Assembly: GCF_964194025.1 (NCBI RefSeq)
Contig: NC_134472.1
Location: 70,804,001-70,868,000 of the forward strand
Direction of reading: 5' to 3'
DNA length: 64,000 nucleotides
Origin: Convolutriloba macropyga
Taxonomy: Eukaryota
Below are positions 1,100-55,461 of the stretch, piece after piece. The translations under genes were made by a program, and so were the position numbers. A model generated the notes under the pieces. It did not search any database and was not told where the DNA came from. It saw nothing but the letters and a program-made list of their open reading frames with translations. How positions within the stretch are numbered: position 1 is the stretch's first letter; each line of letters opens with the position of its first letter.

Positions 1100-3850
1100 A
1101 CATAATTAGATTTTATTGAAGTTTAACTGGTCACTGTTCATTTGAAGCAGAAGTCACGCCTTGTGCTAGCATTTTGTATAGGAACTGCTGTTGACTCGTC
1201 TATAGAATACTTTTTCATTCGACCTTTGAATACTTGTAAACTTACCCTAATATCTTGCAGATATATTGGTAGTGAGTTTCACTTCAGCGCTACATGATTA
1301 CAGAATGATTTAGAGGAAGAATGAGATGCAATAATCCTCACAAAAATTATTTGGTTAGTGTGTTTGTTAATCTTGTAGCGGGCCGTAGATATTTTAATCT
1401 GTTCATGAAAGTTTCTTTTCATATTCCGGATGTTAGGAAGTAGTACGTCAAAATTTTTAACTCGGTCAGCTGTCTTACACCGATCATATTTTTACGTTCT
1501 TCTTATTCAATTGACGACTTGATACTAGTACGAACAAATACACACTTCATAAAACAATTCATGTATTTCTCTGACAAAAGCAACAAAGTTAAACTGTTTT
1601 GAAAGAGGCATAAATCAGAGTGGTCGACAAAACTAATGGCAAGTGAGTAAAAAAGCATGCATAATACTGTGGTGGGAAATCCATGTTGTACTGTTTCAAT
1701 AGTTGATACCAACAGCCGTTTTTTGCATGATTTTCTTACTTGTAATTGAAAACAAAGTTGACTGCCTATGGGAGCACCTAAAAACTTACACTGGTTTGAT
1801 TTTTTTGACTATTCCTGTTCCAACAACTACATTCTCAGAATCATAGAGCCTGTTATCATTTTTGCGCGTGAACGTAATCAACCAATTTTTTAGCATTAAG
1901 TTTAACCTATTGATACAAATATAAGTTTCCGAAATTTTAAAGATTTCATGCAAAAATTTTAAAGGAATATCGGGTTTTTGGGAATAAGAAACAATAAACA
2001 ATCATCAGCATACTGCAAACGTTTACCAATTTCACGTATTGGCTCTGTGTGTTCAATTATAAATAAGTCGAAAACAAGTGTTCCTATAACAGTCCCTCGT
2101 GGAACATCTTGATTAGATCAAACCAAATAGAAACAACTCAATTAAAGCAAACTTGTTTCAATTAATCCGTAAAAAACATTTTATGACCTGCAATGCAGAG
2201 GTTGATAAACTTTGGGATTTCATTCGTTCGAAAAGATTTAGTGTATTAGTTTGTCGAAAACTTTAGATGAATCGATCAAAACTGCATAAACATTAATACT
2301 ATTTAATATTAACGGTTGGACTGATTCAGTGAAAAATAGAATAGCATCTTGTGCTGTTATCATTGTCCAAATTGAAGCACAAGATGGAAGAACACAGTCA
2401 TTAAGGCATTGATTTACAATGAATGTTAGGTGGGGAATTAAAATTTGCTAACTGTCAGAAAAAGCCCAAGAGGGTACTTTACAAGGACCAGTGGGCTTGC
2501 TGGGATTTCACTCTCTAATGTTGTCAGAAAAAATTTTCTTGATATTGGCCCGACCAACGGCGATTCGCCAACATTGAAACAGTTTGTTTCTTCAGCTTTT
2601 TAACCAAAATACTGTCCAGGGGTTTAAGAATAAAAAATTGAAATATTCTAAAATTTTATGTCGTCAATAATCATATCACCGGAGGAACTTTTTACTGCAG
2701 TCATATTTACAGTTAGCTTTTTGGTAAAGCTTCAGCGCTCTTTAGCAGTACTAAGGAAGGAGAAACAGTTGCAGGAGAACTTCTCCTATTTTTCGTTCAA
2801 TGTACGGGACACTTGGTTTCAAAGCCTACTGTATAGTGACAAATGTTCTGGCGATGAAATCAAACTAAAACTCTCATACGCTGTTTAAAGTTCACGCTGT
2901 ACACTTTTGCATTCCCGGTCAAATCCTGTGTTTTTTTTTCAATATTGGAGTTGTTCTGTATAAAAACACTTTTTTAAGGGGTAGAACTTCTGCACTTGAA
3001 AGATGATGAAAAAGCAAATTAAACAGATCATTGGCGTTTCAACAATTATGCATTTTGAATCAGGGCGTATCTGACAATGATTTTCAAAACAAGCTTTTAT
3101 CAAAGCTGTTCTTATTTAAATTTTTAATATGATGCTCTTTTGTTTTCGAAGGCTTATTTCAGTAAACAATACAGATTCAAGTGGTCGTTTTGGAAATGAC
3201 TGTTAAATACAAAATGTCTATTGTTGGCAATTTTTTTTTGATAAAATGTAATCATTGTGAGTTTTCGCTGTCTTACATACGCGCATAGGTAATATTGGAC
3301 CAGCTACTGTGAAACCGTAGGGTAGAACTCTTGAGTCCATATCTATTTTTGAAAAGATTAAAGTAAACTATGTAATTGTTACCAAATAAAACGGTAAGAC
3401 TGAATAGATTCACAAGTAAGGTTTTCTATATCAGTCAAAAAAGGCTGAAGTAACTCACTCTAATATAAAATGAGGGGGTCGGATGTTGTTTTCAAAAGCA
3501 TTTTAGGACAGCTGTTGTTTGTAAATTTGCGCATATTTGCAACCCACAGTTTTAATTCATTAGGTTTTTCTAGGGCTTGTTCTAAATGCTCAAAAATCAT
3601 TACACCGCCCCTTCCCTTTTTTGGGTTGATTGCACTTATATAACATACAAATATTTCATGATTGTTTGGGGCTATATTCCTTAAAGACCTTTTGAAATCT
3701 GCAGTCAACCAGCTTTCTGAAAAATGCACAACATGCACAATGTTTCTCCTATGCCATCAACAATAAACGTCAATTTCATATAATTTTTTTATACGTTTTT
3801 AAAGTTAATATGAGCAACGCATTGTGAATGTCACACGTATGTAAAAAAGG
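1100..3850 (-). mobile_element. Decayed non-LTR retrotransposon ORF2 (APE endonuclease + RT; CR1/L2-like group)
   Basis: Minus-strand motifs occur in the correct order: endonuclease SESWL and KGRGGV (ORF 3460-3738), RT AVLIDSSKVFD (~2255-2285), DVPRGT (~2090-2110, equivalent to GVPQGS) and QYADD (~2000-2015). Many stops and frameshifts. Confidence 0.8.
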
Positions 3851-4726
3851 GGTGTACTAAAAACCTTGGGTTTCAAGGTCAAAGATTTAGTTTAAATTTT
3901 AATTTTTTACTTGATTAATGACTGACACAATCTTGATAGGTGTCGACATATTGAAATAGACAAAGCTCGGGCTTCGAGCAATACTAACAATTGTGACATA
4001 TCAGTATTTACTTGGTTAATTTACCACGGTGATAGAACCGATATTGTGTACGGGCAAAACTGAGGATAAAACTCACTCATTGGATAATAAACCTACCTTC
4101 AGAGTTAATCACTCAATTAGATCTTCATTTATTTGAAACAATTCTCTTCTGCTTTTATCTACTTATTAATTAAACTTCAATCCTTGTATTTTAAACAAGT
4201 ACCACGCTCGACTACAAAAGATAATACATATTGCGCACGGGCGGCTGCTATAATGGCGACAGAGATTAAAAGTAAATAGAAAACCACCACCCAATAACAT
4301 TGAGCGTTGTACTAATTTCCAAGAGAAATCTATTTTTTGTTTGAAAACCAATTTTTAAACTCGAGTTCGACGTCTTAACATCACGACCCGGAGGTGGAAT
4401 TGTGGACTGCTGTCGGGATTCGAAAACAACAACTGCCATCTTGGAACTATAAAGTGAGTACTCCCTAAAAATTCGAATAGCATAAATCAGGGCGTACATG
4501 TTTTTTTGATAATAAAATAGCGTTCAGAAACATCAGTATTTTATTTTGACTTAATTTGACTTAAACTCAAGCATTAAACCTCGAGTGTTTTTTGCATTTA
4601 TTGACGAGGGAATTAGAGTTTCAATCATATTTAAAAGCTGTTAACTAGAGTGTCGAAAAAAATTTCGAGTTTCGAACAGAATTAGTGAAATATTTTGAAT
4701 AACAACAGCTTTTAAATAAAATAAGG

Positions 4727-5390
4727 ATGGCGCGGCACTCCTCAAAAACGCTGTTACCGGAACCGTTTACTGAATCAAATGATTTTGAAAGTTACATTAC
4801 ACACTTTGAGCTCTTGTCACAACTTCAATAGTGGCAAAGAAAAGAAACAGTAAACGGCGCCGAGACCGAAATTGATGAACGGCCGCATTATTTCGCGTTA
4901 AGGTTACAAAAGTCGGCTATTGATTTCTATCGTACACTTTCGGAGGACACTAGAAAAAGTTATGACGAGACCGTAAAGGCTTTCAGACAACATTATAATG
5001 AGAAACCAGTAGTGTTCCGGGGGAGGCTAGCTAGGAGAGTCCAGCAGCCTGGTGAAAAATTAACAGATTTTCTCGGTGATTTGCAAACTTTAGCCTTGAA
5101 AGCATACCCTCAGGAGTCTAATGAGATAAGAAAACATCTCATTTTGAGAGGATTCCTCGAAGGCATAGAAAATAGTCAGTCAGGTGCGACTCGACCTGAG
5201 AAAGAACTTGGGTGACGCGGATATGACTTTAGACAAAGCTTTAGAAAGAGCACTACACATTGAAGCAGTCACGAAAATTGAGGAGGAGAATAATGAGCCG
5301 CGGGTTTCTGCCATCCAGTCGAATGAAAACACACAACTGGTTAATTCGATTAACGATTTAGTGCAAACACTGCAGTCTAATCAACCCTAA
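4727..5390 (+). pseudogene. gag: Retrotransposon Gag (disrupted)
   Basis: ATG 4727 gives MARHSSKTLLPEPFTESNDFESYITHFELL...RVQQPGEKLTDFLGDLQTLALKAYP...FLEGIEN (retrotransposon gag motif QxxxE). In-frame TAG at 4829, 4-bp AGTC duplication frameshift at ~5175, truncated at ~5388. Confidence 0.85.
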
Positions 5391-7045
5391 ATCAACCTAT
5401 AGTTTACCAAGTGCTGGTACCCTGGGGTAGAGTGTCCAACGTTCTTGAGCTGTTACATGATTCGCCTAGCGCAGGACACTTTGGTATAGAGAAAACGTAC
5501 AAAAGAGCTTGCGAAATGTTTTATTGACCGTGCATGAGAAGGGACGTAAGAAACTGGATAGAAAGCTGTGACGTTTGCCTAAAAAGGAGAGGCACTAAGC
5601 AGAAACATCGGCATTCACTCTCAAAATGGAAACCTAGTCATCCATTTTCGCAAGTATCTCTTGATATCATGGGTCCACTTCCCGAGTCTCAGGGAAACAA
5701 GTACATTTTGCTTATCGGTGATCAATTCAGTAAGTGGTACGAAGCTGTAGCGTTACCCAATCAAGAGGCAAAAACTGTGGCAAAAGCGTTTGTTGAACAC
5801 TGGATAGTAAGATTCGGCTGTCGAGTCAATCTACACAGTGACCAAGGGTCAAACTTCATGTCTAAATTGTTTCGTAGTCTTTGCAGTGAACTAGGAATTC
5901 AGAGGACATCAACCACATCCTACCACCAACAAGGGAACGCGATGATTGAACGAACAAATCGAACAATAGAAGAATGTCTCTCCAAATATATAGGACAATA
6001 CCAACACGAGTGGACTAATTTTCTACCTTTAGCGATGATGGCATATCAATCATCAATTCATAGTGTAACAAGATACAGCCCAGCGTTTGTGGTACTGGGT
6101 TTTCCACTGTCGCTACCTATAGAATGCATCTATAGCACACCACAGACCACAATATATGCAACACCAAGTGACTATGTTTTCACGATGAAACAAAAACTAC
6201 AGGAAACACACCAGTTGATGCGAGAGTATATGGATGTCGAACAAGAACGCCAGAAGTCGTATTATGATCGCAGTAAGTAAGGGCCGTGCTATAAAATTGG
6301 CGAACAAGTGTTAGTTTTCAACCCAACGGTTAAAAAAGGAGAAACAAGAAAATTTACTTCTTTCTATAGAGGACCATACATAACTGTTGAAATTATAAAC
6401 GATTTGAATTTCAAGGTAGAAGATAAAAAGACGAGGAAAGCTATCAAGGTCCATTATGACCGACTAAAGAAATATAAACACGAGAAAAACCATTCACGCC
6501 TGAGCCTCAGGCGAAACGAAAAACAACCAGTAAGGAGCAAAAAAATAGCAATTTGAACAGCTCAGACGATGGTGATATAATTGAAATAGAATCATCAACA
6601 GACAGTAAAAGCAATCTAATTACAGAAAATCAATCCGAAGCTGAGCATGCTAGCGATTCACTAAATGTTACAAATGAAACGCCTGAGAATGAAGCTAAAG
6701 AATCAGAGCAAGAAACCTCTAAAGGGCAAGAGAAGGCACAAAATGTATGTTCCCGAGGGTGGAGGTGCAACTTCATCAAAAGCCAGCGAGTACACTGAAA
6801 AAAAATCAGCAGAAACAAAAATTCCAAAAACAGAAAAAAAACAGGAATCTAGTAGTAAAACAAAAAGTACTGAAGAAAAGATTAATAGTAATGCCAGGGC
6901 ACCAAAAATGGCTACAAGGTCTGACAGTCGATTAAAATCGGTGCCTGAGAGATTAAAAAATTACTTTACTGTGCAAGATGAGGAGTACTTTAGCAGCCAG
7001 GAAACTGATGATGTTTTTGTTTCAGGAAAATCCAGAAAGAAATAA
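5390..7045 (+). pseudogene. pol: Pol C-terminal part: gypsy integrase with GPY/F domain and a charged low-complexity tail (disrupted)
   Basis: HHCC finger LHDSPSAGHFGIEKTY...FY*PCMRRDVRNWIESCDVC; DDE triad SLDIMGP / HSDQGSNF / MIERTN; YRGPY...VHYDRLKKY. Stops at 5525 and 6278; inferred frameshifts at ~6478 and ~6745. Confidence 0.9.
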
Positions 7046-9045
7046 TGGAATCGAAAAGAAAGACGAGTTCTTCTGGAGCATCGTGTGATGGAATATCACT
7101 ATGTTTGCATCTGGCATTGCTAGCCGTTTTTGCTTCTCCTTCACTTTGTATTAAATTATACGGCTATGATTTTGACAATATCGTATCAACAAAAATATAT
7201 TCTTTGGATTACAGTACAAACTGTGATAACAAAATTCGAGTATCGAAAACAATAGAAGAAGGTAGTTTGATATATGCTGAGGTTCAGCCCAAGATAAAAT
7301 TAAGATTTTGCATGTATGAAGCGGCATATACTGTGTCTGCACTTAAAAAGAGCAATGTATATGACGATGTTGCCTTTATTACCAAAAACTCAAGACTCTT
7401 AAAATCCATATATCCATTAAACGAAGGAACCTGTAGGAGCATTTGGCAAAACAAAAACTTTGCTTTACCAGGTTTTGGAGATAAAACCTTTAAAGTCAAC
7501 AATTTAGTAACGGAAAAGATTTTACAACGAGCAAGTGAAACTACGTATGCCGAGGAGCATAGCCAGAGCTTCATGAAAAAAAATAATCGTGAAGGTGCTA
7601 TGTATGCTGAGCCTGTAGAGTGGGTTTCACCTACAGGAGTAAAACTTTTTGGAAATGTGATGATCAATGCAAAACTTTACATCGGAACAATTTGGGGAAA
7701 GCTGATACAAAGAAACCTCTTAAGCTTTAAGGATCCCCTAGGTTTCTCGAAAACTGTTTTTATCAAAAACACATATTTTGAAGACGATTTAGTAAACTAT
7801 TTTTTTGAAAATCGAGGTGAGCAAACATGTCAAACGATCAAACACTTTAATAAGGAGGACCACGTAAAAATTTTTGGTAACAACAAGACCACTTTTATCA
7901 GCGGAAAAATATTACACAAAAACAAATATGAAGATTTTGCATTAGAAATCTTAGAGGAAAAAGCAATTAGTTTGTGTGGACAGCAGGTGAAAACAACCGG
8001 AGTTCCAGGTGTTTTTTACTCCGAGGAAAGTTCAGAACTGAAAACTGGTAATCTTAAAATAACCATGGAAATGTTTCTTTCAAGCGTTGTTGACACCTTG
8101 AATTTCGAACTTCTCAAGGAGAGAGAAATTTTTTTTGGGAAAATTAGAACACTCCAATGCGAGATTCAACGACTAAAAATTCAAACTATGATTGAAATAT
8201 CAAAAAACATTGTTAGTCCATCGGTAACGCTCTTCGAGAAAGGAACTCACGTCGAAAGAGCAGGATCTGTGTTAGATGTTCATAAATGTGCAAAGATGGT
8301 AGCAACAATAACTAAACTTCCTTTTTGCACAGAAGAAGTTCCTGTGTTAGTAGAGGGTCAGAATTTTTCTTCTATTAGATATATGGACCCTATTAAAAAA
8401 ATTTTGTATCATAATTATACAATCGCTGCATTCAACCCGCTGTACCCAAATGTTGTGAAATTAGAAGACGGCAGTTTTCAACAATATGGAGAAACGCTGA
8501 AGAAATTCAATCGTGAGGTATATCAGTGGTCGATGAATAATAACTTAAAAGTAAGTGATGAAAACCTGCATCGCAGCCTTTTCTCCATATCAGACGTAAA
8601 ACAAAGTCAAATTGCTCGAACAATTCGCCATAATAGTAAAGGAATTATCAGTCGGGAAGCATTCCGAGATTCGGATGGAAAATACAGTCATGAAAATTTT
8701 ATTCATTGGAACGCTCAGTTCCAAAAACAATTTTTTCTAACAAATGAAATAACAATTTTTCGTAACTTAAAAATTGAAAGCTTATACGTTTGGTTAAAAG
8801 CTAAGGATATTGCTGTGTCAGTCTTAACAGTCTACCTCATATTCCAAGTTGTGAAAAATTTTCCTAAATTGTTCATCTATTTAGGATTAGTCATTAATGG
8901 AGCCTCCTGGCAACAAGTGTTGCGGAATCTCGACCCTGTAACGGGAACACGTATGTATAATCAACTACTCAAATTAATTAATGAGCGTCGAGAACAAAAG
9001 AAAATGATTGAAGAGAAAGAGTCCTTGAAAGAGTCGGTTGTGTAA
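7045..9045 (+). CDS. env: Envelope/fusion glycoprotein, chuvirus (Jingchuvirales) glycoprotein-like, 666 aa
   Basis: Uninterrupted ORF directly after pol. It has a signal-peptide-like N-terminal hydrophobic stretch (LCLHLALLAVFASPSLC), a C-terminal TM-like segment (IAVSVLTVYLIFQVV) and NxS/T sequons. Motifs YGYD..SL...C and LQCE...AGSVLDVHKC...CTEEVPV...YMDPIKKIL...NPLYP match my recollection of the chuviral G consensus. Confidence 0.8.
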   Translation: MESKRKTSSSGASCDGISLCLHLALLAVFASPSLCIKLYGYDFDNIVSTKIYSLDYSTNCDNKIRVSKTIEEGSLIYAEVQPKIKLRFCMYEAAYTVSALKKSNVYDDVAFITKNSRLLKSIYPLNEGTCRSIWQNKNFALPGFGDKTFKVNNLVTEKILQRASETTYAEEHSQSFMKKNNREGAMYAEPVEWVSPTGVKLFGNVMINAKLYIGTIWGKLIQRNLLSFKDPLGFSKTVFIKNTYFEDDLVNYFFENRGEQTCQTIKHFNKEDHVKIFGNNKTTFISGKILHKNKYEDFALEILEEKAISLCGQQVKTTGVPGVFYSEESSELKTGNLKITMEMFLSSVVDTLNFELLKEREIFFGKIRTLQCEIQRLKIQTMIEISKNIVSPSVTLFEKGTHVERAGSVLDVHKCAKMVATITKLPFCTEEVPVLVEGQNFSSIRYMDPIKKILYHNYTIAAFNPLYPNVVKLEDGSFQQYGETLKKFNREVYQWSMNNNLKVSDENLHRSLFSISDVKQSQIARTIRHNSKGIISREAFRDSDGKYSHENFIHWNAQFQKQFFLTNEITIFRNLKIESLYVWLKAKDIAVSVLTVYLIFQVVKNFPKLFIYLGLVINGASWQQVLRNLDPVTGTRMYNQLLKLINERREQKKMIEEKESLKESVV

Positions 9046-9270
9046 AAAAAATGAAAATGGGTTGTCTTGAGTTCAAGACCCAAAAAAAAGAATGAAAATG
9101 ACTTGTCTTGAGTTCAGGACGGGAAACAAAATGAAAATGACTTGTCTTGAGTTCAAGACCAAAAAAAAATTAAAATTAGTTGTCTTGAGTTCAAGACCAA
9201 AAAAAATGAAAAAGAGTTGTCTTGAGGTCAAGACAATTAAAAATAAGGGAGAAGTCTTGAGATCAAGACT
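9046..9270. repeat. Array of six 16-bp palindromes GTCTTGA-GN-TCA(A/G)GAC in 35-41 bp A-rich units
   Basis: Copies start at 9064, 9105, 9144, 9182, 9219 and 9254. GTCTTGA and TCAAGAC are reverse complements; copy 2 has one mismatch. Confidence 0.95.
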
Positions 9271-9351
9271 GAAAATATTGAGAAACTTTAGAAGCAAAAA
9301 TGGTGTTTATTAAACATAGCAGGCAGTGAGACCCCACAAATTGGTGAATAT

Positions 9352-10218
9352 GTGTACTATATGCCAGAGTTGTGGAAAGTTATTTCGGAGATTTCCCCGG
9401 GAGTGTACCGAGTGGAATATTGTCTGTCAAGGACTCGGAAGGTGTCTACACTAGAACCTCTGGCACCAGCCAATATTCGGTCCCGAGCTCTGCAGACTGA
9501 AGTGGAACTGCAAAGCCAGTGCGCGCAGTTAGAGAAATTGAAGAGTACAAACTCTTTACTCCAAAAAGATCTTGTCGAGCTTCGACAACAACTAGACAGA
9601 CATTGCGACAAAGCCAAAGAGGCAACAAGAGAAGCATTGGGAAAACTGAGCGCCGAGTGTGGGGCGCTAAGAGATAACCTAAAGGCGGCGGCAGCTAGAA
9701 ATGCCGAACAAGAGCAGTCAATCGACTTACTTAAGCAGGAGTTGGCCGATCTAAAAGTCAATACTGATAAAAAGAGCGAAGCCCTGGAGAAAATGGAGAA
9801 AGAGAATGACCAATTGAGGTCAGAGCTTCAGCAGTTGGAAAACTATAACCAGTACTTGGCGAGTGAGTGCCGAAGGAAAGACACTACAATTGATAGACAA
9901 AAGCATTCTTTGAAGAACGAGAGAGCCAAAACGAAGGCCACAGAGAAGTGTTTATTCGAGGTTCGAATTAAAAATGTACTGAATTGGCCTGCGACATTGT
10001 ACGAGATTTTGTTGGTAAAAAGTTCTGCTTCAAAAGATCAGATCAAAAAACACTACCACAAAATGAGCTTGTTGACTCACCCTGATGCTAGTGGAGATGA
10101 GGAGTTTTTCAAGATCATTAATCGAGCATACCAAATACTGATGAACGATGGGGCGCGAGAAGCGTACAACAATTTCGGGCTGGACGAGGCAGAGAAACTC
10201 ATGAATGACGAAAAATGA
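9352..10218 (+). CDS. Coiled-coil protein with C-terminal DnaJ/Hsp40 J-domain (element-borne accessory gene)
   Basis: Long heptad-rich central region followed by TLYEILLVKSSASKDQIKKHYHKMSLLTHPDASGDEEFFKIINRAYQILMNDGAREAYNNFG, a canonical J-domain with HPD. First in-frame ATG is 9361; the frame is open from 9292. Confidence 0.85.
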   Translation: MYYMPELWKVISEISPGVYRVEYCLSRTRKVSTLEPLAPANIRSRALQTEVELQSQCAQLEKLKSTNSLLQKDLVELRQQLDRHCDKAKEATREALGKLSAECGALRDNLKAAAARNAEQEQSIDLLKQELADLKVNTDKKSEALEKMEKENDQLRSELQQLENYNQYLASECRRKDTTIDRQKHSLKNERAKTKATEKCLFEVRIKNVLNWPATLYEILLVKSSASKDQIKKHYHKMSLLTHPDASGDEEFFKIINRAYQILMNDGAREAYNNFGLDEAEKLMNDEK

Positions 10219-10334
10219 TACCTAAACTTTTTATATGAAAAGTACAAACTTTTTGTAATTTAAAACGCTTATGTATCGAGAGCTGTAAAATTTGTTTGAT
10301 TTTATATGAGTGAGTGGCACACTCTATTCTTATT

Positions 10335-10350
10335 GAGAGGGGGCAGTGTG
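10335..10350 (+). promoter_or_regulatory. Polypurine tract and probable start of the 3' LTR (TGT at 10347)
   Basis: GAGAGGGGGCAG|TGTGAG, ~120 bp after the J-ORF stop; a typical gypsy PPT/LTR junction. Confidence 0.65.
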
Positions 10351-10499
10351 AGTGTTTTTTTCCTCGAATTTTCTTTGTATTCAGTTTCTGGGCCCGGATT
10401 TCGCTCGACTTCACCACGGTTGTTCAAAAATAGTTCAGCAAACAAAAAAAAACGTCAATGCGCAAACTGATGTGTCAGAAAAATTCTTACATACGACAG

Positions 10500-10930
10500 A
10501 GTTAAGCTCTTGTCCCACTTTTTGAACCTATTAAAATTTTCAAACGCAATCATTTCAATTTCGTGCATTGTGAAAGTAAATTTCTCATTATCGGTAAGAA
10601 CCTTACCAACATTGTTCTCTTCCTCAATTCACTAGTTATATTGGCACGAACTGGGGTCAGGCCGTCATTAGCAAAATGTTCAGTATTTTTTAAACTCCGG
10701 TTTTGTTTATCAACTAACTAGTGCTTAATAACGTCTAACAAATTTGGCAGTTGTCGGTTTTGCGCCTGTACCTCCAATTATTAAGTGATGAATTGTACTA
10801 ACATAATTTGAAGTGATTGCAACACCGGCTTTCTCAGCCACAACCACCATCTCTGCAAAGACATCCTAACCTGGCTCCTCATCCACACTAAAGATACGCA
10901 CATTTTCCCTGCTCATGTACTACTCAATAA
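10500..10930 (-). mobile_element. Decayed LINE ORF1 (L1-ORF1/Tnp22-like) remnant
   Basis: Minus-strand reading resembles RENVRIFSVDEEPG..DVF..KAGV..IT..KP.TAKFVRR..NDGLTPVRA, the typical CR1/L2-group ORF1 pattern, with stops. Confidence 0.6.
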
Positions 10931-10944
10931 TTTTAGCCTCTTTG

Positions 10945-11305
10945 ACTGAACACAGGGACTCCACAGCAGAGGAACGCTTTTTTCCATTTCCTGGACAACA
11001 CAGAAAAATAGGATGGGCCTTGTGAAGAAATTTTTGGGGATGATTGTCGGCACCCAGTTGTTTGTCCAAATGTTGCAGCCATTCCCATCAAGCCCCGGGC
11101 ATATAAATTTTTCAGCATCACAGTTTCAACATCTGGGAGCCGACAGTGTTACTTTTTTAACATCAGCATCACAGTTTTCAGCATCGAGGTGCGGACATTC
11201 ATCCCCAAAATTTTTTTCCGAAGGCGTTCTTATGTTTCTGTGTTGTCCAGGAACAGTAAAAAAGCGTTGCTTTGCTGTTTAGGCCCGGAGAGGAATTTCA
11301 GTTCG
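10945..11305. mobile_element. MITE / foldback element with ~100 bp imperfect TIRs
   Basis: 10963-11060 (ACAGCAGAGGAACGCTTTTTT..TTCCTGGACAACACAGAAA..TTTTGGGGATGA) is the imperfect reverse complement of ~11180-11278. There are internal CAGCATCACAGTTT repeats. Confidence 0.75.
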
Positions 11306-12166: not shown

Positions 12167-12610
12167 ATGAGTCAACCTCAGAGCGCCAACGTAGTCCAAG
12201 TGTTCGGTAGAAAGAAGACGGCAACTGCTGTTGCTCACTGCAAGGATGGCAGTGGAATGATTCGAGTCAATGGACGACCTCTTGACATGGTGGAACCCCG
12301 ATGCATGCAACTTAAACTGTTGGAGCCAATCCGACTGTTAACTTCAGTTTCTCTGTACCCTAAAGTTGACATTCGAGTTCGCGTCAACGGCGGAGGACAA
12401 GTTTCAAAGATTTATGCCGTCCGTCAAGCAATTGGAAAAGCACTTGTCGCTTACACTGGGAAAGTGGCTGATGAAAATAAGAAACAGATGGTACGAAAGC
12501 AGTTGATCATGTACGACAAAACGCTCTTGGTTGCTGATCCTCGAAGAAGAGAGCCCAAGAAATTCGGCGGTCCAGGTGCCCGTGCCAGATACCAGAAGAG
12601 TTACCGTTAA
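12167..12610 (+). CDS. RPS16: 40S ribosomal protein S16 (uS9)
   Basis: [17 protein letters not shown]...[11 protein letters not shown]...[24 protein letters not shown]; complete 147-aa ORF with no CDS intron. Confidence 0.97.
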
Positions 12611-15559: not shown

Positions 15560-18500
15560 TGTGGTATCAGAGGCCGGATTTTGTTTGGGTAGCTCCAGTT
15601 ACCGGGGATTTTAGATTCCGGCGGAAGATTTTACGGGAGATTTATCTACAATTCAATATTTGATATCAAGCATTTGGCGCTAGAGTGCTCCGCGTCTGCT
15701 TGATTGATTCGATTCCCTACATTTTTGGCCATACTAAATATTTTTTCGGAGCCAAACATTTGATGTGAGTGTTCTCCACATTTGTTTGACTAATTAGTCT
15801 AGGCCCCTAGCGGCCACTTCCCTTATTCCCTCTTTTCCCAAGTTACGTTGGTGCACCCACCACCGCCGCCACCTCCCGAACCTCTCTGCAATATTTGTAA
15901 CGAGCCTTGCAATGTACAAGTGAGCGCATTTTGTGTCAAATGTAAGAAAATATGTCACTTTGGTTGTCTGGGAATTTCAAGTACGGCAAATATCAAAGGA
16001 ATGATCTACTGGTCATGTACTGGTTGTACTCCTATATTTACTGCAGAACTATCTGAGCTGGACAGAACTACGGCTGTTGAGAAAAAGCTCGATTGTGTTG
16101 ATTCTCTGATCTGCGAGGTGACTACTACGCAATGATATAGCGTTGATAAAGAAACTCCATTTCCCTTTCCTAAAAGCTGCCAAAAGATGACCTGCCAGGA
16201 ATCGAAGAATCGAAACGACAGCTCATCCAGTTATCAGAGTGCGACAGTAAACAAAAAGAGAAATGCGGATGAAATTGAATTTGAAACTGTACCGAGAGAA
16301 GGAGGTAAAAACTGGAACGAACACCAATCCAGCAGTCATCATGGGTGTAAAAAACCCCCGAAGCATCGTCATTTATATGTAGGTCGATTGAGTTAGAACA
16401 TAACAGCATCACAAATAGAGGAGTACTGTGCAGAAAATAAGGTTGAACTACTTCATTTTCGCCAAATTTCGAAGTCAGAAGCTCACCTGAAAGCTTTTCA
16501 TTGGATAATTAAGTTTGATGAGGAGAAATTAGAGTTACCTGATTTCTGGCCGGAAAACGTTACTTTGTCAAGATTTTACCTGATTGAAGCCGCCCGTGAT
16601 TGGTTAGAAACAGTGGATCAAAAATGACCACTAGCCATTCCTCAATTTAAACAAAGGACGAAACAAAGATCTACAGAACTAAACATTTGTCTACATAATG
16701 TTCGCTCTATCAGGAACAAAACAAAGGATGTATGTAAATGCCCTCTTAGAAGTAAATGAAATTAGTTTTGGAGTATTTATAGAATTGTGGATTACGAATA
16801 ACTCAAATGACGATGTTATTCTAAAGCAGTGCTGTCCCCCAGGATTTTTTTCTATAGTGCAACAAGGTTAATGAAAGAGGAGGCTGAATTTGCCTCTTTT
16901 ACAGACGTAATCTCAATTTGGAAAATTTTGAAAAGTTTGCCTCTGAATTTTTCGAATGCTGCTATGCCTCTTTAACTGTTGTGACTACCACTTATTTAGT
17001 AATCGCTGTTTTTCGACAACCTGTGTTAAATGTTGAATCTTTCATTGATCATCGTTATCTTTGAAGAAAAAAGGCTACAATTCGACAAGATTGTTATCAT
17101 GGGTGATTTTAAGGTTTCACTAAATGTAATTAACGATGCATCATTTGACTATATTTTAGCGTCAAACAATGTCTCAATGAATGTTAAATCGAATAGCTTC
17201 ATTACTTCTTCGGACCATTCGTTTATTTGCTTCTTGCTCAGCAATATGACACAACGCAAATCGCAACACCAGTTGATGTACTGAAGGTTTTAATAAGTTA
17301 TTGAAGCCGTGCTTAAAATTTGATTTTGCCTCCAGTTTTGCTGAAGCATGGGCTATGTATCTAAGGTCTGAGGAGATTTTTGATGATTTTCTAAGGTTTG
17401 ATCATTTTGAATTCCGTTCTACCTCTCAAAATAAAAACATTTACTAAACGTCAATGCCCATTTTTTGACAACGAGATTTTAAGTTTGAAATAAGAGAAAA
17501 GAAAAGCAGAGCGTAAATATAGGAAATCGAAAACATCTGTACTAAAATCTGAAAATGAAAATGTTACCCATATGTATTTTGAAAAATTCTAAGAAGCGTA
17601 GATTATACATTGAGAATGCGTTGATGGAAAATTGTAGCCGTAAAAGGTTGCCACCTTAAAATTGCTTCTTGGTCAAAATGTAAAACAGCTCGCAAAATTT
17701 GTAAAAAAAACAGCTTGCAAACGATTTCAACAAGTTCTTTATATCTTAAGTGGAAACTATGATTGCATCGATTCCCACTGCCATTTGTCCTGAAATTCTG
17801 AAGGCTGAAGTTAGCTCAATGAGTTCGTTCAAAGAGTTGTCGATAAGTCAGTTAAGAGATTCGATTTTGGCGTCGTCAAACAGTACATCTGCACTGGAAA
17901 TCATTCCCACATTTTGTAAAGTCATTTCCAGACTTTTTTCTCGACTTTCTGAAGTTTATTAATCTTTCGCTGAAGGCGGGATATTTTCCTCAGTCCTTTC
18001 AAATGGCAATTGTTAAACCCCGCGCGAAGGAAGCAAATTCTCATAGTGAAGATTTTTCAAACTATCGACCTATCTCAAACCCGTTACATTTCAAAACTAT
18101 TGAACGCGCGGCTTTTATGCAAATGCGAGAGCACTTTAAAAAGATTAATCTATTTAGTCAATACCAAATTGCCTACAGGAAGTTTTTTCATGAATTTCTT
18201 CTTTCGATTCTTGAAACAAGTTTGGTTTGCAAAGATAAAGTGCTTAGCTTTTTAAATAGTTATCTGATTGGTAGATCTCAAAAAGTGTTGATTGATGGTG
18301 AATATTCGATGGCAAGAACTATTAAAACGGGTGTTCCTCAAGGATCTGTTCTAGGTCCTGTTCTCTTTTCATGCTATCTTGTTCCTCTTGAAGTTCTGTT
18401 TGAACGTCTTGATGTCAATTATCATTTTTATGCCGATGACACTTATCTATTTTATTTACCATGCTTCGATAAATCAGGGGTCTTTTGGTTTGATACTTTG

Positions 18501-19308
18501 CAAAAGTGTTTCAGTAGTGCTAAGCTCCGATTAAGCTCGAATAAAACTGAGTTCTTGTTTATTAGTAGAAAGAATAGTTAAATAGCGATATTGAACTTCC
18601 AGCTGTCGTCAATTTTTCTAATAATGTTACTTTGTTGGGCTTCAACTTAGATTCCCGACTTTCATATACAAAACCAGTTAGTTCTGAGCGTCGTAGATGC
18701 TCAGAACTGAGTTAGTTCTGAGCGTCGTAGATGCTTTTTACGAAAAATTTATTCCATCAGAGATACAGTCGACAGAAATTCGTTGATCGAGTTAGTTTGG
18801 GTAATGATTCTCTCGCTACTAGATTACTGCAACTCACTGTACTATGGACTACCTGCGTATACTATAGATATTACAGCGTATAATGAACCCAGCGTGTCGT
18901 GTCATTTTTAGGCTATCGCCTTGTTCACCAACAGCAAATAATATCAAAGAGCTTTATTGGCTACCCATGAAACAGCGAGTCCCCTACAAAATTCTACTTT
19001 TTGGTGACCGTTTGGTTCACCATCCGTGGAAATTTCCCGTATCTTGGCGCATTAGATTTTCCAAATGATAAGGTGACTGGATGCCAATATGCGTACAATC
19101 TGAAGGTTCCTAATGTCAGGACTGGATTTAGACAAAGATCATTCAGTTTTGCAGTTCCTTTTAAATGGAATATGTTGCCTTTTGAAATGAAACTGATGCC
19201 CCATGAGTTTGATTATCGGAAAAAACTGAATTTTTTTTAATCTTTGATTTTGAAAGAACTTTTGAGTTTGTAAATGGTGCGTAAACCTAAATTATAATAA
19301 TAATAATT
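15560..19308 (+). mobile_element. Near full-length decayed L2-clade LINE (ORF1 with PHD finger; ORF2 APE-RT; (TAA)n tail)
   Basis: PHD finger CNIC..CVKC..HFGC..WSCTGC (15848-16135). Endonuclease HNVRSIRNK, MGDF and SDH. RT NYRPIS, GVPQGSVLGP and FYADDT. L2-type LDYCNSLYYGLP and LYWLPMKQR. TAATAATAATAA at ~19295-19306. The 5' end is approximate. Confidence 0.9.
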
Positions 19309-19399
19309 CCTTAGTCATGAGGGCAAACGATTAATTATGTTCATAGATGCTAATGAAAAAATATTAGTGAGGCTTATTACAAAGTTTTTGTTTGTCGCG

Positions 19400-19930
19400 A
19401 TAAATAAACCCGTTCCCGCTGTTTACATGAAAGCTTTTGCAAGGAGCGTCATTGCTCGACTCGTTTTGAATTGAAAGAAATATGCGTAGTGTACGCGGTC
19501 ATTTCTTTTGAAAGCGACTTTAATATGTTTAACCTTATTTAATTGCTCTCGAACGAAGGTTGAAGCAGTTTTTGTAAACGTTTGTCTCCTTTTTATGCAA
19601 AAGTTTTGCACGATCGTTTTCTTCTAGAACATTCTCTTTATTTCATTTCAATTTTTTTCACAATTAGTTCTCAATTTCTTGTTTGACCTTAATTGCTCTA
19701 TTTGAGAAATTAAGTCTGCGTTGCAGAAATAAAAGCGATTGTTAGCTGCGAGAGCAGAAATGCCCTGATAGGAGGTCGGGGGTTCGAATCACTCTCTAGT
19801 TGGACCGGAACCATAAAGAGAAGTTTTTCTTTGACACAGCCCCTCTGAATTAAACTGCCCCGCCTGTCGTTCGACTGCAATTTGTCCGACGTTAGTCTGT
19901 TTAAAGCTTAACTTTTCAAAATTTATGTCC
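19400..19930 (+). repeat. Dispersed repeat with tRNA-like segment (related to 28480-28760 and 38950-39395)
   Basis: Shared AATTGCTCTCGAACGAAG..TGTAAAC..TTCTAGAAC core; B-box-like GGTTCGAATC at ~19781-19790. Confidence 0.65.
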
Positions 19931-20577
19931 CCAATACGTCAGTGGTTTGAATTCTGGATTATGAGCGCCAAAAAGCCACTGAAGAGTTAAAAAATACTAA
20001 AGAATTGATTTCATTTAGTTTGCTCACATAAAACTTGACCTAGTGTACAAAAATTCTCCAATGAATTAATCGCTACTGAAATTTTTTTTGGTATTGCGAA
20101 AAGAAATCAGTATTAAAATTTTATTTAATGTTTTCGATGATTTTCTATTATTATTGTACTCCCATATTTTTTTGGTATCATAATCCGAGTCATTTTACAG
20201 TCAATTTTCTTAGTCGTTTCTGGCGAAAATCAGGAAAATAACTGTACGTTTGGCTGTGATTATATTACTGCCTAGAAATTAGTCCAGGTGGAGAAACGTA
20301 TGATTCGACTTAGGAAAACAGCTCAACTTACCGTATTTTTCTATAAATTTTCCCTATATTTTTAATTATATGATAGGTCTAAGTCGTAAGTTTTGTGTTA
20401 AATTTGTACAGGAAGACAGATAATACAGGATAAATTATGTAAATTAATACTTTTCTATTTAATGATGTATTGTCAAACAGTTCATTTTGAGATTAAACCG
20501 GATCAACGTAAGAAACTTTTAACAACTGGGTATTTTGAATCATTTTCCGGTTTAATGAAAGCTTAAAAGTACATAGA

Positions 20578-20742
20578 ATGAAAAGAAAAAGGCAGCCAGG
20601 TTTAGCAGAAGCGAGGAATGATGTTTTGGAGGCAGTTGTAGCCAATTACGAGGACGAGGGTCTAGATCCTGAGTCTAAGGACAACGACAATAAGAGTGAA
20701 TCATCAGATGACGAACAGGAGGACGTCGACTCCGAAACAGAG
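20578..20742 (+). CDS. EBNA1BP2: rRNA-processing protein EBP2, exon 1
   Basis: MKRKRQ...acidic N-terminus ending DVDSETE|GT, phase 0, joining LQIALESGLLKPGLNV of exon 2. Confidence 0.75.
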
Positions 20743-21238
20743 GTCAATTGCCGACTTCTTAAACCTTTGGCTCATTTTTTTTAAATCTGGGAGTCAGATT
20801 TTATACAGCATCTACTTTATTAATTTAACCTAAAGCCATAGGAATATTGGAGGTTTTATAAAGTTACTTTTCTGTATGATAGCTCCCGAACGCCTTTAAT
20901 TTCGATTTACAATATCAGGAAATATTTTCAGTAAAATAATATCATTGTTGACTGGTGAAATTTACTACTGGGGTTTTAGATTTGAATTTGCTGTTTTATG
21001 AAAAGTTGACAGATTTTTTTTGGTATTTATTATTGTATTGTAGACGCATGGTTTATGACTCTCAATTTCAAATCATGTATTTGGAGTGGAGTTGGGATGC
21101 CTTCAAGTTGCATGCCCACTAAGTTGACCCGGGGGGGGGGGGGGGTAGTTGACATCATTTGGCATTATATTGAGGAATCGTTTGGCAGTGGCCGGATATT
21201 ATCAGTGTTTTATTCGCGGTGGCCGCCGTATTGGCCGA

Positions 21239-25019: not shown

Positions 25020-25525
25020 TTAACAGGAGGTGCATAATGAGTTTTTCCGAGGAGGTCTTGACAATCTGCGGAGCTTGAAACCGGGAGTTGCATTTCTGTT
25101 TGCCTCTTTAGCCAGTACCATGTCAGCAACACTCTCGAAAAGATCCTTTACGCCCTCGCCAGTTTTCGCTGATGTTTGGAAACTTCTGTGGTATATAGAA
25201 CCGGATATTTGCTCGAGTGTTCGTGTCTGTATTCGTTTCATGTCGCATTTGTTGGCAACCAGAACGAAAACGGTGTCGTCGGGAACTATTTCTTCAGCCT
25301 TTTGCTTCCACTGGTCAAGAACTGACATGGATTTGTCATCGTTGATTGCAAATACGATTATGACTGCGTCTGCAAATCTGAAATTGACAGAGGGTACAGT
25401 TGATACGTCGCATTGTTGCCCACTTAATGTCCACAAATTCAAGTCCATCCGAGTTTTGTTTCGGATAATCCTCTTAACGCAGAAGTCGCTGCCGAGAGTG
25501 GCAACGTAGGTTTCGTTGAAGCGAC
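25020..25525 (-). CDS. Rab-like small GTPase, exon 2 (nested antisense in EBP2 intron 2)
   Basis: TTTCAG|GRFNETYVATLGSDF...LNLWTLSGQQ...VANKCD...TSAKTGEGV...LCTSC*; phase matches exon 1. Confidence 0.88.
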
Positions 25526-52320: not shown

Positions 52321-54248
52321 ATGGCAGGATTGCACGTTTGCCCAAAAGTGGAACCCGACCCGCTAACGGAATCGGACGAATATGAAGAAAACGACACGGT
52401 TGATGACGATTTTAGTAACTGTTCTAGTTCTTTGACCTTGAAATTACCCGAAGTTCAAGTTAGTTCAAACAACGATTCGGACCTAATAAGTGAACATATA
52501 TACGCATTGCCCTTTCCTAAACTAGCAAACCCTAATGCCGACACGTTAACGTTTAAACACCATAGTAGCACCAGGACCACCCCAACGTCGGCAAATCCGG
52601 TTCCCAGAATTTCGAGTCCTGAAATCTCTGTAAGTATGACAGTCCCGAAACCCGTTGCGGGGTTTCCGAGCGTTCCACCGTTGCATCGAAGGAACACAGA
52701 TACGATTCTGAAACATCCTTCATTACATCGGCCAATCGCTCCTAGACCTCAAGTTTCCAAATATGGAACCAATCCTCGACTTGCGACATCTAATCAAGCC
52801 GAATGGCTTACGTCATCGCCTGGTGATTGGACGACGAGAAGTTTCGGGAGATTTAAGAAAACCGAGAGCACAATTTTGCCCTCGACGTCGTCCGAACATA
52901 ACAGTAATGAAAACGATTACTATTCGCCCGGAGATTATATTGATGTAAACGGTCGAATGTTTTATAAGCGAGGTTCTTTAATGGATCATCAATTGTACTG
53001 CGAGAGTAAGAATTTCGAAAAGAGGTCGAGTTATAATAACGCAACCGGGGGCGGGGTTTACTTAGAACCAGTGCAATTGTTAGCTTTGCATGATAACGGG
53101 CAACTAAGACCCGTTTCTTTTGTGAGCCCACAAGAGCAGCAGTATGGCAGTATTTACGAGAGTACTAATAAGAATGATAGCGATAGCTCAGGGGCGGCTG
53201 CGAATCATGGTTTTAAGATGACAAAATTTGACAAAAATAGACGGCCCGTTTCTATGATAAACTTGGGAACAAACAGCAGCAATTCAGGCGCTCAGAAACA
53301 TTTGCAAATATTGACTCAATGCTACGAGGTCGAGTCATCAAGAGAGAACATAGATCGTACAGCAGACAATTTAGTCAGTAATGCAAATGAATCATTTATA
53401 ACCAGCACCACCACAACTAATGGTAATATTAATAACAATGCGACTAGTATTAACAATAACCAGCTGAACTTAAAACAAACTTTGACTTCTACGACTCAAA
53501 GCAAAACATACACAAATGGTCTAACCTCAAATGGACACCATCAAACGACCAAATCCGCCACTAATTTAACCTTAAGTCACTCAAACGATCAAAATTTACC
53601 GCCTTCAAACTATCAAAGACTGGTTATAAACAGTCCTAAAAAGACGTCAAGCTTTATGGAAACTCTTTCGAGCTCCGAAAGCGAAAGTGTCGCTAGTTCG
53701 TCAACTAGTGGAAAACCTTCAGGAATCCCGAACCGCTTCGAGCAGAAGTACAAATTCGACCTAAACAGTGAATCGGAAATTTCTTGGGGCGATGCTGAGA
53801 TGGCATTCGGAGTTCAAGTCACGAAAGAGCATGTTGTGAACAGGAATTACTACTATGACTTTCGAGTTACAGCGAGCGAAGGTGCCAACGTAAACTACCA
53901 CTCATTAGACCGGGAGTTTGATTTCATAACCACAAATTTTCCGCTGGTCGAAACGAAATTCTTCGAGGAACAACTTCGGAGAGTCTACCCGACCATCGTA
54001 ATTCCAGACTGTCCTCAACTATCGCCAACTCCCAGCTCTGGGCCATACTGTGGAACTCTTTCGTTGGAAATCTGGCTGTCGTGGCTCGGGAGGCATCCGG
54101 TTATTGGGAAAAGTCCTATTTTCTGGCATATGTTGCGATATGCCAGGAGTAAAGACTGGCATGGCCAGAAGACATCAATCAAGAAAGTGGAACAGTTTAT
54201 TAAGCAAAGGGGAGCTTCGCTAGCAGATGGAGCGGCTGAAAATGCAAT
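52321..54248 (+). CDS. Sorting nexin SNX9/18/33-like (PX-BAR), exon 1
   Basis: Long S/T/N-rich disordered N-terminus, then PX-like YYYDFRVT..YPTIVIPDCP..LEIWLSWLGRHPVIGKSPIFWHML..KDW (compare SNX9 CRHPVIS.SEVF..FL..KEWK). Donor AT|GTACGT, phase 2. Confidence 0.8.
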
Positions 54249-55461
54249 GTACGTATTTTCCACGATTGCCCAGTTTATGCCCATTTTAAAAACTCACTTT
54301 TTGGAATTTGTTGAATGCATATTGCACATATGTTTACATGCAAAAATGACCTTAAAGTTAGATTAAATTAGTTCGGAGTTTATTTTTTAATATGCAGATA
54401 TTGACGGTTACAATTTTATCGACTAATAACAGCGTTTACAATGAAGTTATCCTAGACTAACGTCAAATTTCGGCGACCTATTGTTTAAATGATAATTTGT
54501 TGTTTACAGCTTCCATGTCATTGTAGGGTATGTACGGTTTTGTTTCTATTTCGAACTGATAAAATTCAGTTTTCATCCTATAACAATCATTACCTTTCAG
54601 TTACTCTCTGCAGGAGTTACTAGCTTACATTTTCTGTTTACGTTTGCTTAATTCTCTTTACATTCTGGTATCAAGTCAAATTTATTTTGGAACCAATCAA
54701 CTAAAAAGGCTGTTTAACGAGGAGGCTCGGTGATGTGCGGACGCACATAATGTTCTGTCTCATCTAATTCCTAATCTTTGATCCATTTTTTCTCAACTAG
54801 AGGACATAAAGTGATTCTTCGAAAACCGAGAAACAATTTCTAAATGCTGACGTAACTAACAAAAGTTTCCCCAAAAAATTAGCCTCTGGAGTGAAAAGTA
54901 GTTTTGATGCCTGAGCAACTCAATTACTAAAACTACCAAAAAAGTCACATCTTGGACCGATCAAGCAAAAATAAAAATATAATTTTATAAATCAACTTGA
55001 AACTTTGTGAAAGAGCAGAGTTTCCGAATTTGTGCATTGTCTGCTCTACGGGTAGTTGAGAAAAACATGTGCTCAAATTAAAAAAGGTCAATTTTGGGGT
55101 TGATGATGTGTAAACTGCAAGGATTGTTGGAAAATTCCGGAAAACGGACGATAACTCTTCCTAATAGCCTACAGACGTGAAAACATCACAGACAACCTTA
55201 CAAAGAAAACTTTAATTCCGAGTAGAGTACGCTCATGTATATATTTATTTAATGCGTGCGCCTGATATGCAAATTATGACAAAGGGTAATAAATTTCTAA
55301 AAAGTAAAATTTTTCTGTTATGTCTACATTTCCAGTCAAACTCCTTCAAAAAGACTGCAGAATTTTAATTAACGGCTAGAGAAATTTTTTTCGAAATGAA
55401 ATGTATGTTAACATATACTGAGTTTACTTGCAGAACATCCTTTGAAGCAAAAACGGGTTCA

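Follow-up and report, generated by a model that had tools for sequence, protein, structure and literature searches.

We analysed a stretch of 64,000 nucleotides from Convolutriloba macropyga (NCBI RefSeq assembly GCF_964194025.1, contig NC_134472.1, positions 70,804,001 to 70,868,000 of the forward strand; the whole stretch is called the window here). It carries an element with long terminal repeats (LTRs) that holds two intact open reading frames (ORFs), one for a viral-type envelope glycoprotein (env) and one for a protein with a DnaJ-type J domain (the J ORF). By alignment to full-length copies, the element spans 3823-10355 (+). The 5' LTR (3823-4252, ~430 nt) begins TGTGA..., finishes ...GCTGCTATA and is 96-97% identical to both LTRs of two other copies, L002 and L011. 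A primer-binding-site-like sequence of the TGG type, TGGCGACAGAGA, follows 1-2 nt past the LTR (4254-4265), and the same sequence lies 3' of the 5' LTR in L002, L003, L004, L006 and L011. A tRNA scan and an Rfam scan of the window returned no tRNA gene and no Rfam match. A broken gag-pol remnant (4728-7044) comes next, with the gag start ATG at 4728; it consists of the N-terminal two thirds of gag followed by integrase (IN), and protease (PR), reverse transcriptase (RT) and RNase H (RH) are absent. The rve core of the integrase lies at ~5636-5923 and is followed by a C-terminal domain and a long charged tail (Pfam rve, 4.5e-14; Integrase_p58_C, 1.1e-6). Downstream of it are the intact env gene (7045-9045, 666 aa), a palindrome array of 6 units of ~37 nt each (9044-9282) and the intact J ORF (9361-10218, 285 aa), which starts with the ATG at 9361, the mechanical start being a GTG at 9352. 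The polypurine tract (PPT) GAGAGGGGGCAG occupies 10335-10346, with TG at 10347-10348 directly after it, and the first ~9 nt of a 3' LTR form a stub (10347-10355), at the end of which the similarity to full-length copies stops. All of these features are on the plus strand.

An earlier reading of this DNA from its letters alone (the sequence-only reading) had placed here, at 4400-10500, a gypsy-type element with a chuvirus-like envelope and a DnaJ co-chaperone gene. The gag, integrase, 666-aa ORF, palindrome array, J ORF, PPT and TG that it listed were all recovered on the plus strand at the positions claimed. The extent was wrong and is corrected to 3823-10355; the 430-nt 5' LTR at 3823-4252 had been missed. 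Position 10347, which had been taken for an LTR start, does match the start of the 3' LTR in other copies, although only ~9 nt of that LTR are left in the window. Because the 3' LTR is truncated, a repeat search and an LTR comparison detected no LTR pair within the window.

Copies for comparison were fetched from the ENA assembly ERZ25071359, which also holds the window, on a 296-kb contig. Self-comparison of these loci revealed LTR pairs of ~430 nt, 88-99% identical, that enclose the J ORF in L002, L003, L004, L006, L011 and L012. The full-length element measures ~9.8-10 kb and has the order LTR, primer-binding site, gag, PR-RT-RH-IN, env, palindrome array, J ORF, PPT and LTR. The best copy, L011, is 9,838 bp long, with LTRs that are 99.3% identical and a perfect 4-bp target-site duplication (CCAG/CCAG). 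Its ORFs encode gag (343 aa, with a zinc knuckle), PR-RT-RH (836 aa), IN (439 aa), env (666 aa) and the J protein (285 aa), and it is interrupted in pol only, by one frameshift and one stop. Target-site duplications were also present in L012 (GAAA/GAAA) and L004 (ATTT/ATTC), and a clear one was not found in L002 and L003. Full-length copies with PR-RT-RH, LTR pairs, target-site duplications and a shared env-array-J order, the search for which the sequence-only reading had proposed, thus exist in this genome. In L003, a purine tract of the 3' LTR type stands right before the 5' LTR (~1488-1502), which hints at a tandem or recombinant pair of copies.

The copies also bear on whether the J ORF belongs to the element. 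Taken by itself, the window, with a 9-nt stub and no LTR pair, could be read as holding a neighbouring host gene, with no LTR start at 10347, and the sequence-only reading had named such an outcome, with other copies lacking the J ORF, as the one that would undo its proposal. What we found instead were six LTR-bounded copies that enclose the J ORF, with the 3' LTR starting at the site homologous to 10347, and at least 157 clusters of copies of the ORF; a host neighbour is therefore hardly credible. In addition, GAGAGGGGGCAG directly precedes the 3' LTR in all six (L002, L003, L004, L006, L011 and L012), and in these LTR-bounded copies ~125 nt separate the end of the J ORF from the PPT and 3' LTR, a spacing that the window (10218-10347) matches exactly. 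The same LTR pairs enclose env, so that both extra ORFs lie within the element, as had been claimed. Because the LTR-bounded copies enclose it, the J ORF is a gene of the element, its fourth, and not a host neighbour.

The window copy is a defective member of a multi-copy family. Its gag has one frameshift and one stop, and 219 of the 343 reference residues are present. Through a single internal deletion of ~2.9 kb, gag lacks its end, IN lacks its first residues, and PR, RT and RH are lost entirely. The rest of IN (547 of 560 reference residues) contains 7 in-frame stops and no frameshift, and env and the J ORF have zero breaks. Editing or hypermutation was considered as the source of the 7 IN stops and rejected, as the substitution spectrum against L011 had no strong G-to-A bias. 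Between the window and L011, env differs at 1.5% of sites and gag, IN and the J ORF at 2.4-2.7%, a small gap of uncertain meaning.

The class of the element was read from the pol of L011, in which Pfam domains occur in the order gag-asp_proteas, RVT_1, RT_RNaseH_2/RT_RNaseH, Integrase_H2C2, rve and Integrase_p58_C. The best PDB matches were the Ty3 RT (4ol8, E 8e-82) and the Ty3 Gag-Pol (7q5b), and retroviral and foamy RTs and the 'Enzymatic polyprotein' chain 8r0s matched far more weakly. An assignment to BEL/Pao was ruled out by the Ty3-like RT and by the L011 ORFs having no Pfam match to Peptidase_A17, the BEL/Pao protease. Judged by domain order and best PDB matches, the element is of the Ty3/gypsy (Metaviridae) type, and the earlier call of a gypsy-type pol is confirmed by the Ty3 RT being its best solved-structure match. 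Taken together, the locus is best explained as a defective copy of a multi-copy, errantivirus-like Ty3/gypsy element with the J ORF as its fourth gene, an explanation that we consider likely.

The envelope gene

The env translation has an N-terminal signal-like hydrophobic segment and a C-terminal membrane anchor. It matched the Pfam family PF24664 (Monjiviricetes_fusion) with 28.6 bits at a cut-off of 27, and the L011 env did so with 40.3 bits. A sequence search of PDB with env gave no match, so it was placed by Pfam and fold comparison only. An AlphaFold2 model built with 39 relatives was confident at residues 80-260 only, with a mean predicted local distance difference test score (pLDDT) of 55.7. 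When this model was compared with a viral library by Foldseek, the top matches were glycoproteins of xinmo-, chu- and rhabdo-like viruses (E 1e-11 to 1e-7), and against PDB it matched the thogotovirus Gp, herpesvirus glycoprotein B (gB) and baculovirus GP64. The top ranks held class III glycoproteins only; template modelling (TM) scores were low, ~0.2, because only residues 80-260 are confidently modelled. The PF24664 match above cut-off and the class III matches in Foldseek bear out the chuvirus-like nature that had been proposed for env. The env product is a class III fusogen, of the type found in Monjiviricetes (chuvirus/rhabdovirus-like); 'chuvirus-like' is a fair label for it, and 'class III, Monjiviricetes type' is safer.

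In all full copies env lies inside the LTR pair, and its start abuts the end of the IN ORF. Among the copies sampled, the window and L011 have an intact env, L002 and both L005 copies have lost part of it, and in L003, L004, L006 and L012 several stops or frameshifts interrupt it; the tblastn stop counts for L004 and L006 are unreliable owing to long low-identity alignments. An exhaustive search recovered 380 relatives of env, mostly fragments. A word-indexed search returned no match, which is a limit of that search, as an env of the same length exists in L011.

Glycoproteins of chuviruses are common as endogenous viral elements in arthropod genomes (PMC7642597, PMC10084718), and the 666-aa ORF might on this precedent be a stand-alone insertion of that sort that came to lie beside a retrotransposon by chance. 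However, env stands between IN and PPT within LTR pairs in many copies, and a relative with a 29%-identical env (L007, L008) shares the gag-pol-env order. The chance reading is accordingly given next to no probability; a non-retroviral chuvirus insertion was ruled out by the synteny of env within the LTRs.

Gypsy-type elements with a viral env are now known to be widespread in animals. Ty3/gypsy elements carrying env occur across metazoan phyla, with ENV of the F type or the herpesvirus gB type, and have been called 'ancient errantiviruses' (Chary & Hayashi, eLife 2026, PMC13524379); they include gB-type, Chuviridae-like glycoproteins beside a gypsy POL. The novelty that had been attached to a gypsy element with a chuviral-type env is not upheld, because the same combination is reported there. 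Our element resembles those elements in its order of LTR, gag, PR-RT-RH-IN and env, in its class III glycoprotein and in being multi-copy with young copies. It differs from them after env: those elements have three ORFs, and DnaJ or J domain is not mentioned in that paper (0 occurrences), whereas here a fourth ORF, the J ORF, and a palindrome array follow. In mosquitoes, LTR elements of the BEL/Pao group likewise have an env that is a class III glycoprotein of Jingchuvirales-like type (Dezordi et al. 2020, PMC7642597), but the element described here has a Ty3/gypsy pol and the additional J ORF.

The J-domain gene and the palindrome array

The J ORF matched the Pfam DnaJ family (PF00226) with E 1e-16 and 61.2 bits (cut-off 27.8). 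In PDB it matched 37 J domains at E <=0.001, the best being cellular (Sis1, DNAJB and DNAJA, E 2e-10), and these sequence searches returned no named viral J-domain protein. The HPD motif is at residues 240-242 of 285 aa and aligns with the HPD of Sis1. The protein has a short N-terminal part, a long coiled-coil-like helix at ~37-203 and a C-terminal J domain at ~210-275; in the AlphaFold2 model, ~37-203 forms a single long helix (pLDDT >90), and C-terminal helices bracket the HPD loop. The Pfam scan gave DnaJ and coiled-coil-type matches only, and no glycine/phenylalanine-rich region, zinc finger or substrate-binding domain. By this architecture, with the J domain at the C-terminus, the product is classed as a class C (type III) J-domain protein.

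Relatives of the J ORF were found in ENA as 83 protein clusters of 56-95% identity with a single query and as at least 157 clusters with a profile. In the largest cluster, roughly half of the members listed are full length, and HPD is retained in 28 of the 37 cluster representatives that cover that site. Three relatives are joined to other parts of the element: in the fusion ORF P0002 (324 aa), the J ORF is joined to the membrane-anchor end of env, and P0075 and P0080 have DnaJ joined to Integrase_H2C2 or the gag aspartyl protease. These three are deletion derivatives that retain the J domain.

A distant relative of the element was found at four loci (L007-L010) in other ENA assemblies, a TARA Oceans scaffold and a Logan assembly. 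Its 679-aa env (P0087) is 29% identical over the full length, and it has an intact gag (329 aa), pol (1,296 aa) and env, followed by an ORF4 of 325-348 aa with a coiled-coil stretch; the pol domains of L007 are in the PR-RT-RH-IN order, as in L011. A Pfam scan detected no J domain in ORF4, and the relative has no palindrome array. Neither BLASTP nor hhalign (probability 0.3%) found homology between ORF4 and the J ORF, and we accordingly make no claim that the J ORF descends from ORF4. Elements of this group may commonly have a fourth ORF behind env; on the present data, the J domain is confined to the family described here. The 8.8-kb contig of L007 repeats its end (8050-8826) at its start (1-322) and is either circularly permuted or a tandem assembly, and the stretch read between ORF4 and gag contained no recognisable LTR.

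Each unit of the palindrome array in the window consists of an A-rich spacer and a 16-nt palindrome, GTCTTGAG-N-TCAAGAC, with 7-bp arms. In eight copies an array of 5-21 units separates the stop of env from the start of the J ORF, and none of the younger-subfamily copies examined lacks it; the motif was not found elsewhere in the window or in the fetched loci. In L005 (1152-1921) the array has grown to 21 units, and the cause appears to be a duplicated block of ~8 units. The array is absent from L013, a copy of an older subfamily that does have the J ORF, and so it is a later addition that the J ORF does not require.

Two readings give the array a defined part. In one, a possible sub-mechanism of the explanation favoured above, the J protein would be an RNA-handling regulator, like CERV or Rev, that recognises array RNA by its stalk, with the J domain helping to remodel an RNA-protein complex. 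The gypsy-type element Cer1 offers a precedent, as its 3' accessory protein is reportedly made from a spliced mRNA and needed for genomic RNA export (PMC10309623). Consistent with such a role, in all younger copies the J ORF directly follows the array, whose palindrome core has stayed far more constant than the A-rich spacers. Furthermore, pairing holds at 511 of the 574 arm positions, G-U pairs number 26 on the plus strand and 8 on the minus strand, and the array RNA folds far better than its shuffles (z = -7.05 on the plus strand and -4.96 on the minus strand), as any palindromic repeat would by construction. On the other side, the array is missing from the old subfamily even though the J ORF is present there, the Pfam scan gave no RNA-binding domain, and a single inherited variant accounts for most of the G-U excess; the strand-specific wobble was accordingly set aside as weak evidence of RNA structure. 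An RNA regulator of this kind is in our judgement rather unlikely.

The Su(Hw) site array of Drosophila gypsy is the model for the other reading, in which the array would be a DNA-level row of sites for a dimeric host factor, acting as an enhancer, an internal promoter of the J ORF or an insulator. Perfect 7-bp inverted arms, a regular spacing of ~37 nt and the range of 5-21 units suit this. However, no factor is known, and the commonest variant breaks the symmetry of the DNA while keeping a G-U pair in RNA. We regard a row of protein-binding sites as improbable, to about the same degree as the RNA regulator, and an action of the array at the RNA level is slightly favoured over one at the DNA level.

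Retention and possible role of the J protein

The history of the J ORF can be followed through copies of different age. In L013, the copy from the old subfamily, the genes stand in the order gag-pol-env-J, and its identity to L011 at the amino acid level is 56% for gag, 43% for env and 56% for the J protein. In this subfamily, which is ~50% diverged, the J ORF is thus still placed after env, so the association of the J ORF with the element predates the split of the subfamilies, and the J protein has diverged no faster than gag. At the other end of the age range, L002 is young (LTRs 98% identical) and has lost most of env but kept the array and the J ORF. The pol of L013 contains an internal tandem duplication of ~1.9 kb (3563-5451 and 5467-7318, 90.7% identity).

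LTR retroelements do capture host sequence, and the J ORF might be such a transduced piece of a host gene, a neutral passenger without a role for the element. Bdelloid LTR elements, for example, have captured ORF3s that encode a GDSL esterase, a DEDDy exonuclease, coiled-coil or transmembrane proteins (Rodriguez et al. 2017, PMC5408684). A passenger would also be in keeping with the pairwise ratio of nonsynonymous to synonymous substitution rates (dN/dS) of the J ORF, which between subfamilies is ~0.5-0.6 and so not far below 1, and with the loss of HPD in 9 of the 37 representatives. Against this, the position and the coiled-coil/J architecture have been kept through a divergence as deep as that of gag (L013), the J ORF has been kept in deletion derivatives that lose env (L002), and many J ORFs are still open; loss of HPD in some representatives is what the decay of dead copies predicts. 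We therefore consider a neutral passenger unlikely.

We favour instead a gene that serves the element. Its intact J domain with the HPD motif suggests that the J protein would recruit host Hsp70. In the mechanism that we propose, the protein would be made from a subgenomic, probably spliced, mRNA and would oligomerise or dock via its helical stalk, while HPD would switch on host Hsp70 at some step of the element's own cycle. Candidate steps are the assembly or disassembly of particles and the handling of the glycoprotein or of RNA. The array would be a later-acquired cis element of the env-J spacer, and more likely an RNA structure or an A-rich leader of the J ORF than protein-coding. The most specific form of this proposal, in which the lineage has held a selectively retained J gene since before the ~50% subfamily divergence and harnesses host Hsp70 with it, the array having co-evolved in the same module, is given a little less than an even chance.

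Several observations weigh against the explanation that we favour. The J-domain part of the AlphaFold2 model is of low confidence. The family has been seen in one assembly only, as all 8 of the 8 clusters with a contig looked up lie in ERZ25071359. The dN/dS between subfamilies is only moderately below 1 and was obtained from copies chosen for an intact J ORF, an ascertainment effect; near-identical copies give values near 1 for every gene, the J ORF included, as expected for decay after insertion. In addition, the N-terminal ~45 residues of the J protein differ between the subfamilies, which leaves the true start or the exon structure uncertain, and L013, as described above, manages with a J ORF and no array.

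To our knowledge, accessory genes, the mark of 'complex' as opposed to 'simple' retroviruses, are hardly known outside vertebrates, and CERV of the Cer1 element is one example. Like the J ORF product, CERV of C. elegans Cer1 is a non-env accessory protein encoded at the 3' end of a gypsy element (Sun et al. 2023, PMC10309623); the abstract of that report describes it without any J domain, and by this description it is set apart from the J ORF. Among accessory proteins of gypsy-type elements, CERV is the nearest precedent in function. The bdelloid elements (PMC5408684) likewise bear extra ORFs of cellular origin downstream of pol, but the ORF3 types reported there include no J domain, and here the extra ORF comes besides a bona fide env. 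A literature search, which did not cover Repbase or GyDB, found no precedent for a J-domain gene in any LTR retroelement. What is new here is thus the retained J-domain gene together with a family-specific palindrome array, in an otherwise known kind of env-carrying gypsy element.

Many viruses recruit chaperones by binding host Hsp40s. The T antigens of polyomaviruses have a J domain of their own, with HPD, which recruits host Hsc70 for the virus's purposes. In those DNA viruses the J domain is at the N-terminus of a multifunctional protein, whereas here it is C-terminal, behind a helical stalk, and belongs to a retroelement. If the proposed role is true, the J ORF would be the first Hsp40 encoded by a retroelement, in parallel to the J domain of the T antigens, and a retroelement-borne co-chaperone of Hsp70 would mean that a retroelement can carry the means of chaperone recruitment in its own genome. 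Such a gene would also offer a natural way to find the step of the gypsy/errantivirus cycle that depends on Hsp70. The family numbers hundreds of copies in several subfamilies, and its deletion derivatives retain the J ORF; it is an unusually clean data set and suits the study of how a captured host domain turns into a retroelement gene.

Surroundings of the copies

In the window, the truncated element is closely followed by an inverted repeat of ~100 nt (10955-11054 and 11188-11286, 81% identity). Within a few kb downstream of three copies, and on the same strand, there are ribosomal-protein-like ORFs: a full-length intronless RPS16/uS9 ORF of metazoan-like type in the window (12167-12610, +; Pfam 1e-35), a Ribosomal_S13 ORF near L011 (15794-16099) and an 847-aa ORF with a Ribosomal_L1 domain near L012 (12044-14587). 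Their proximity may reflect coincidence, retrocopies or a target preference. Near L012 there is also a non-LTR retrotransposon (17096-20858, -) with GDSL-lipase-like, Exo_endo_phos endonuclease and RT ORFs.

Elsewhere in the window, a 681-aa ORF (52321-54366, +) occupies a locally GC-richer patch (GC 0.42) with a positive AT skew like that of the element; it gave no Pfam match, no PDB sequence match and no similarity to env. Another retroelement is represented by a fragment, a 192-aa ORF (18003-18581, +) that matches RVT_1, and a 142-aa ORF (25023-25448, -) matches Ras-family GTPases and is probably an exon of a host gene.

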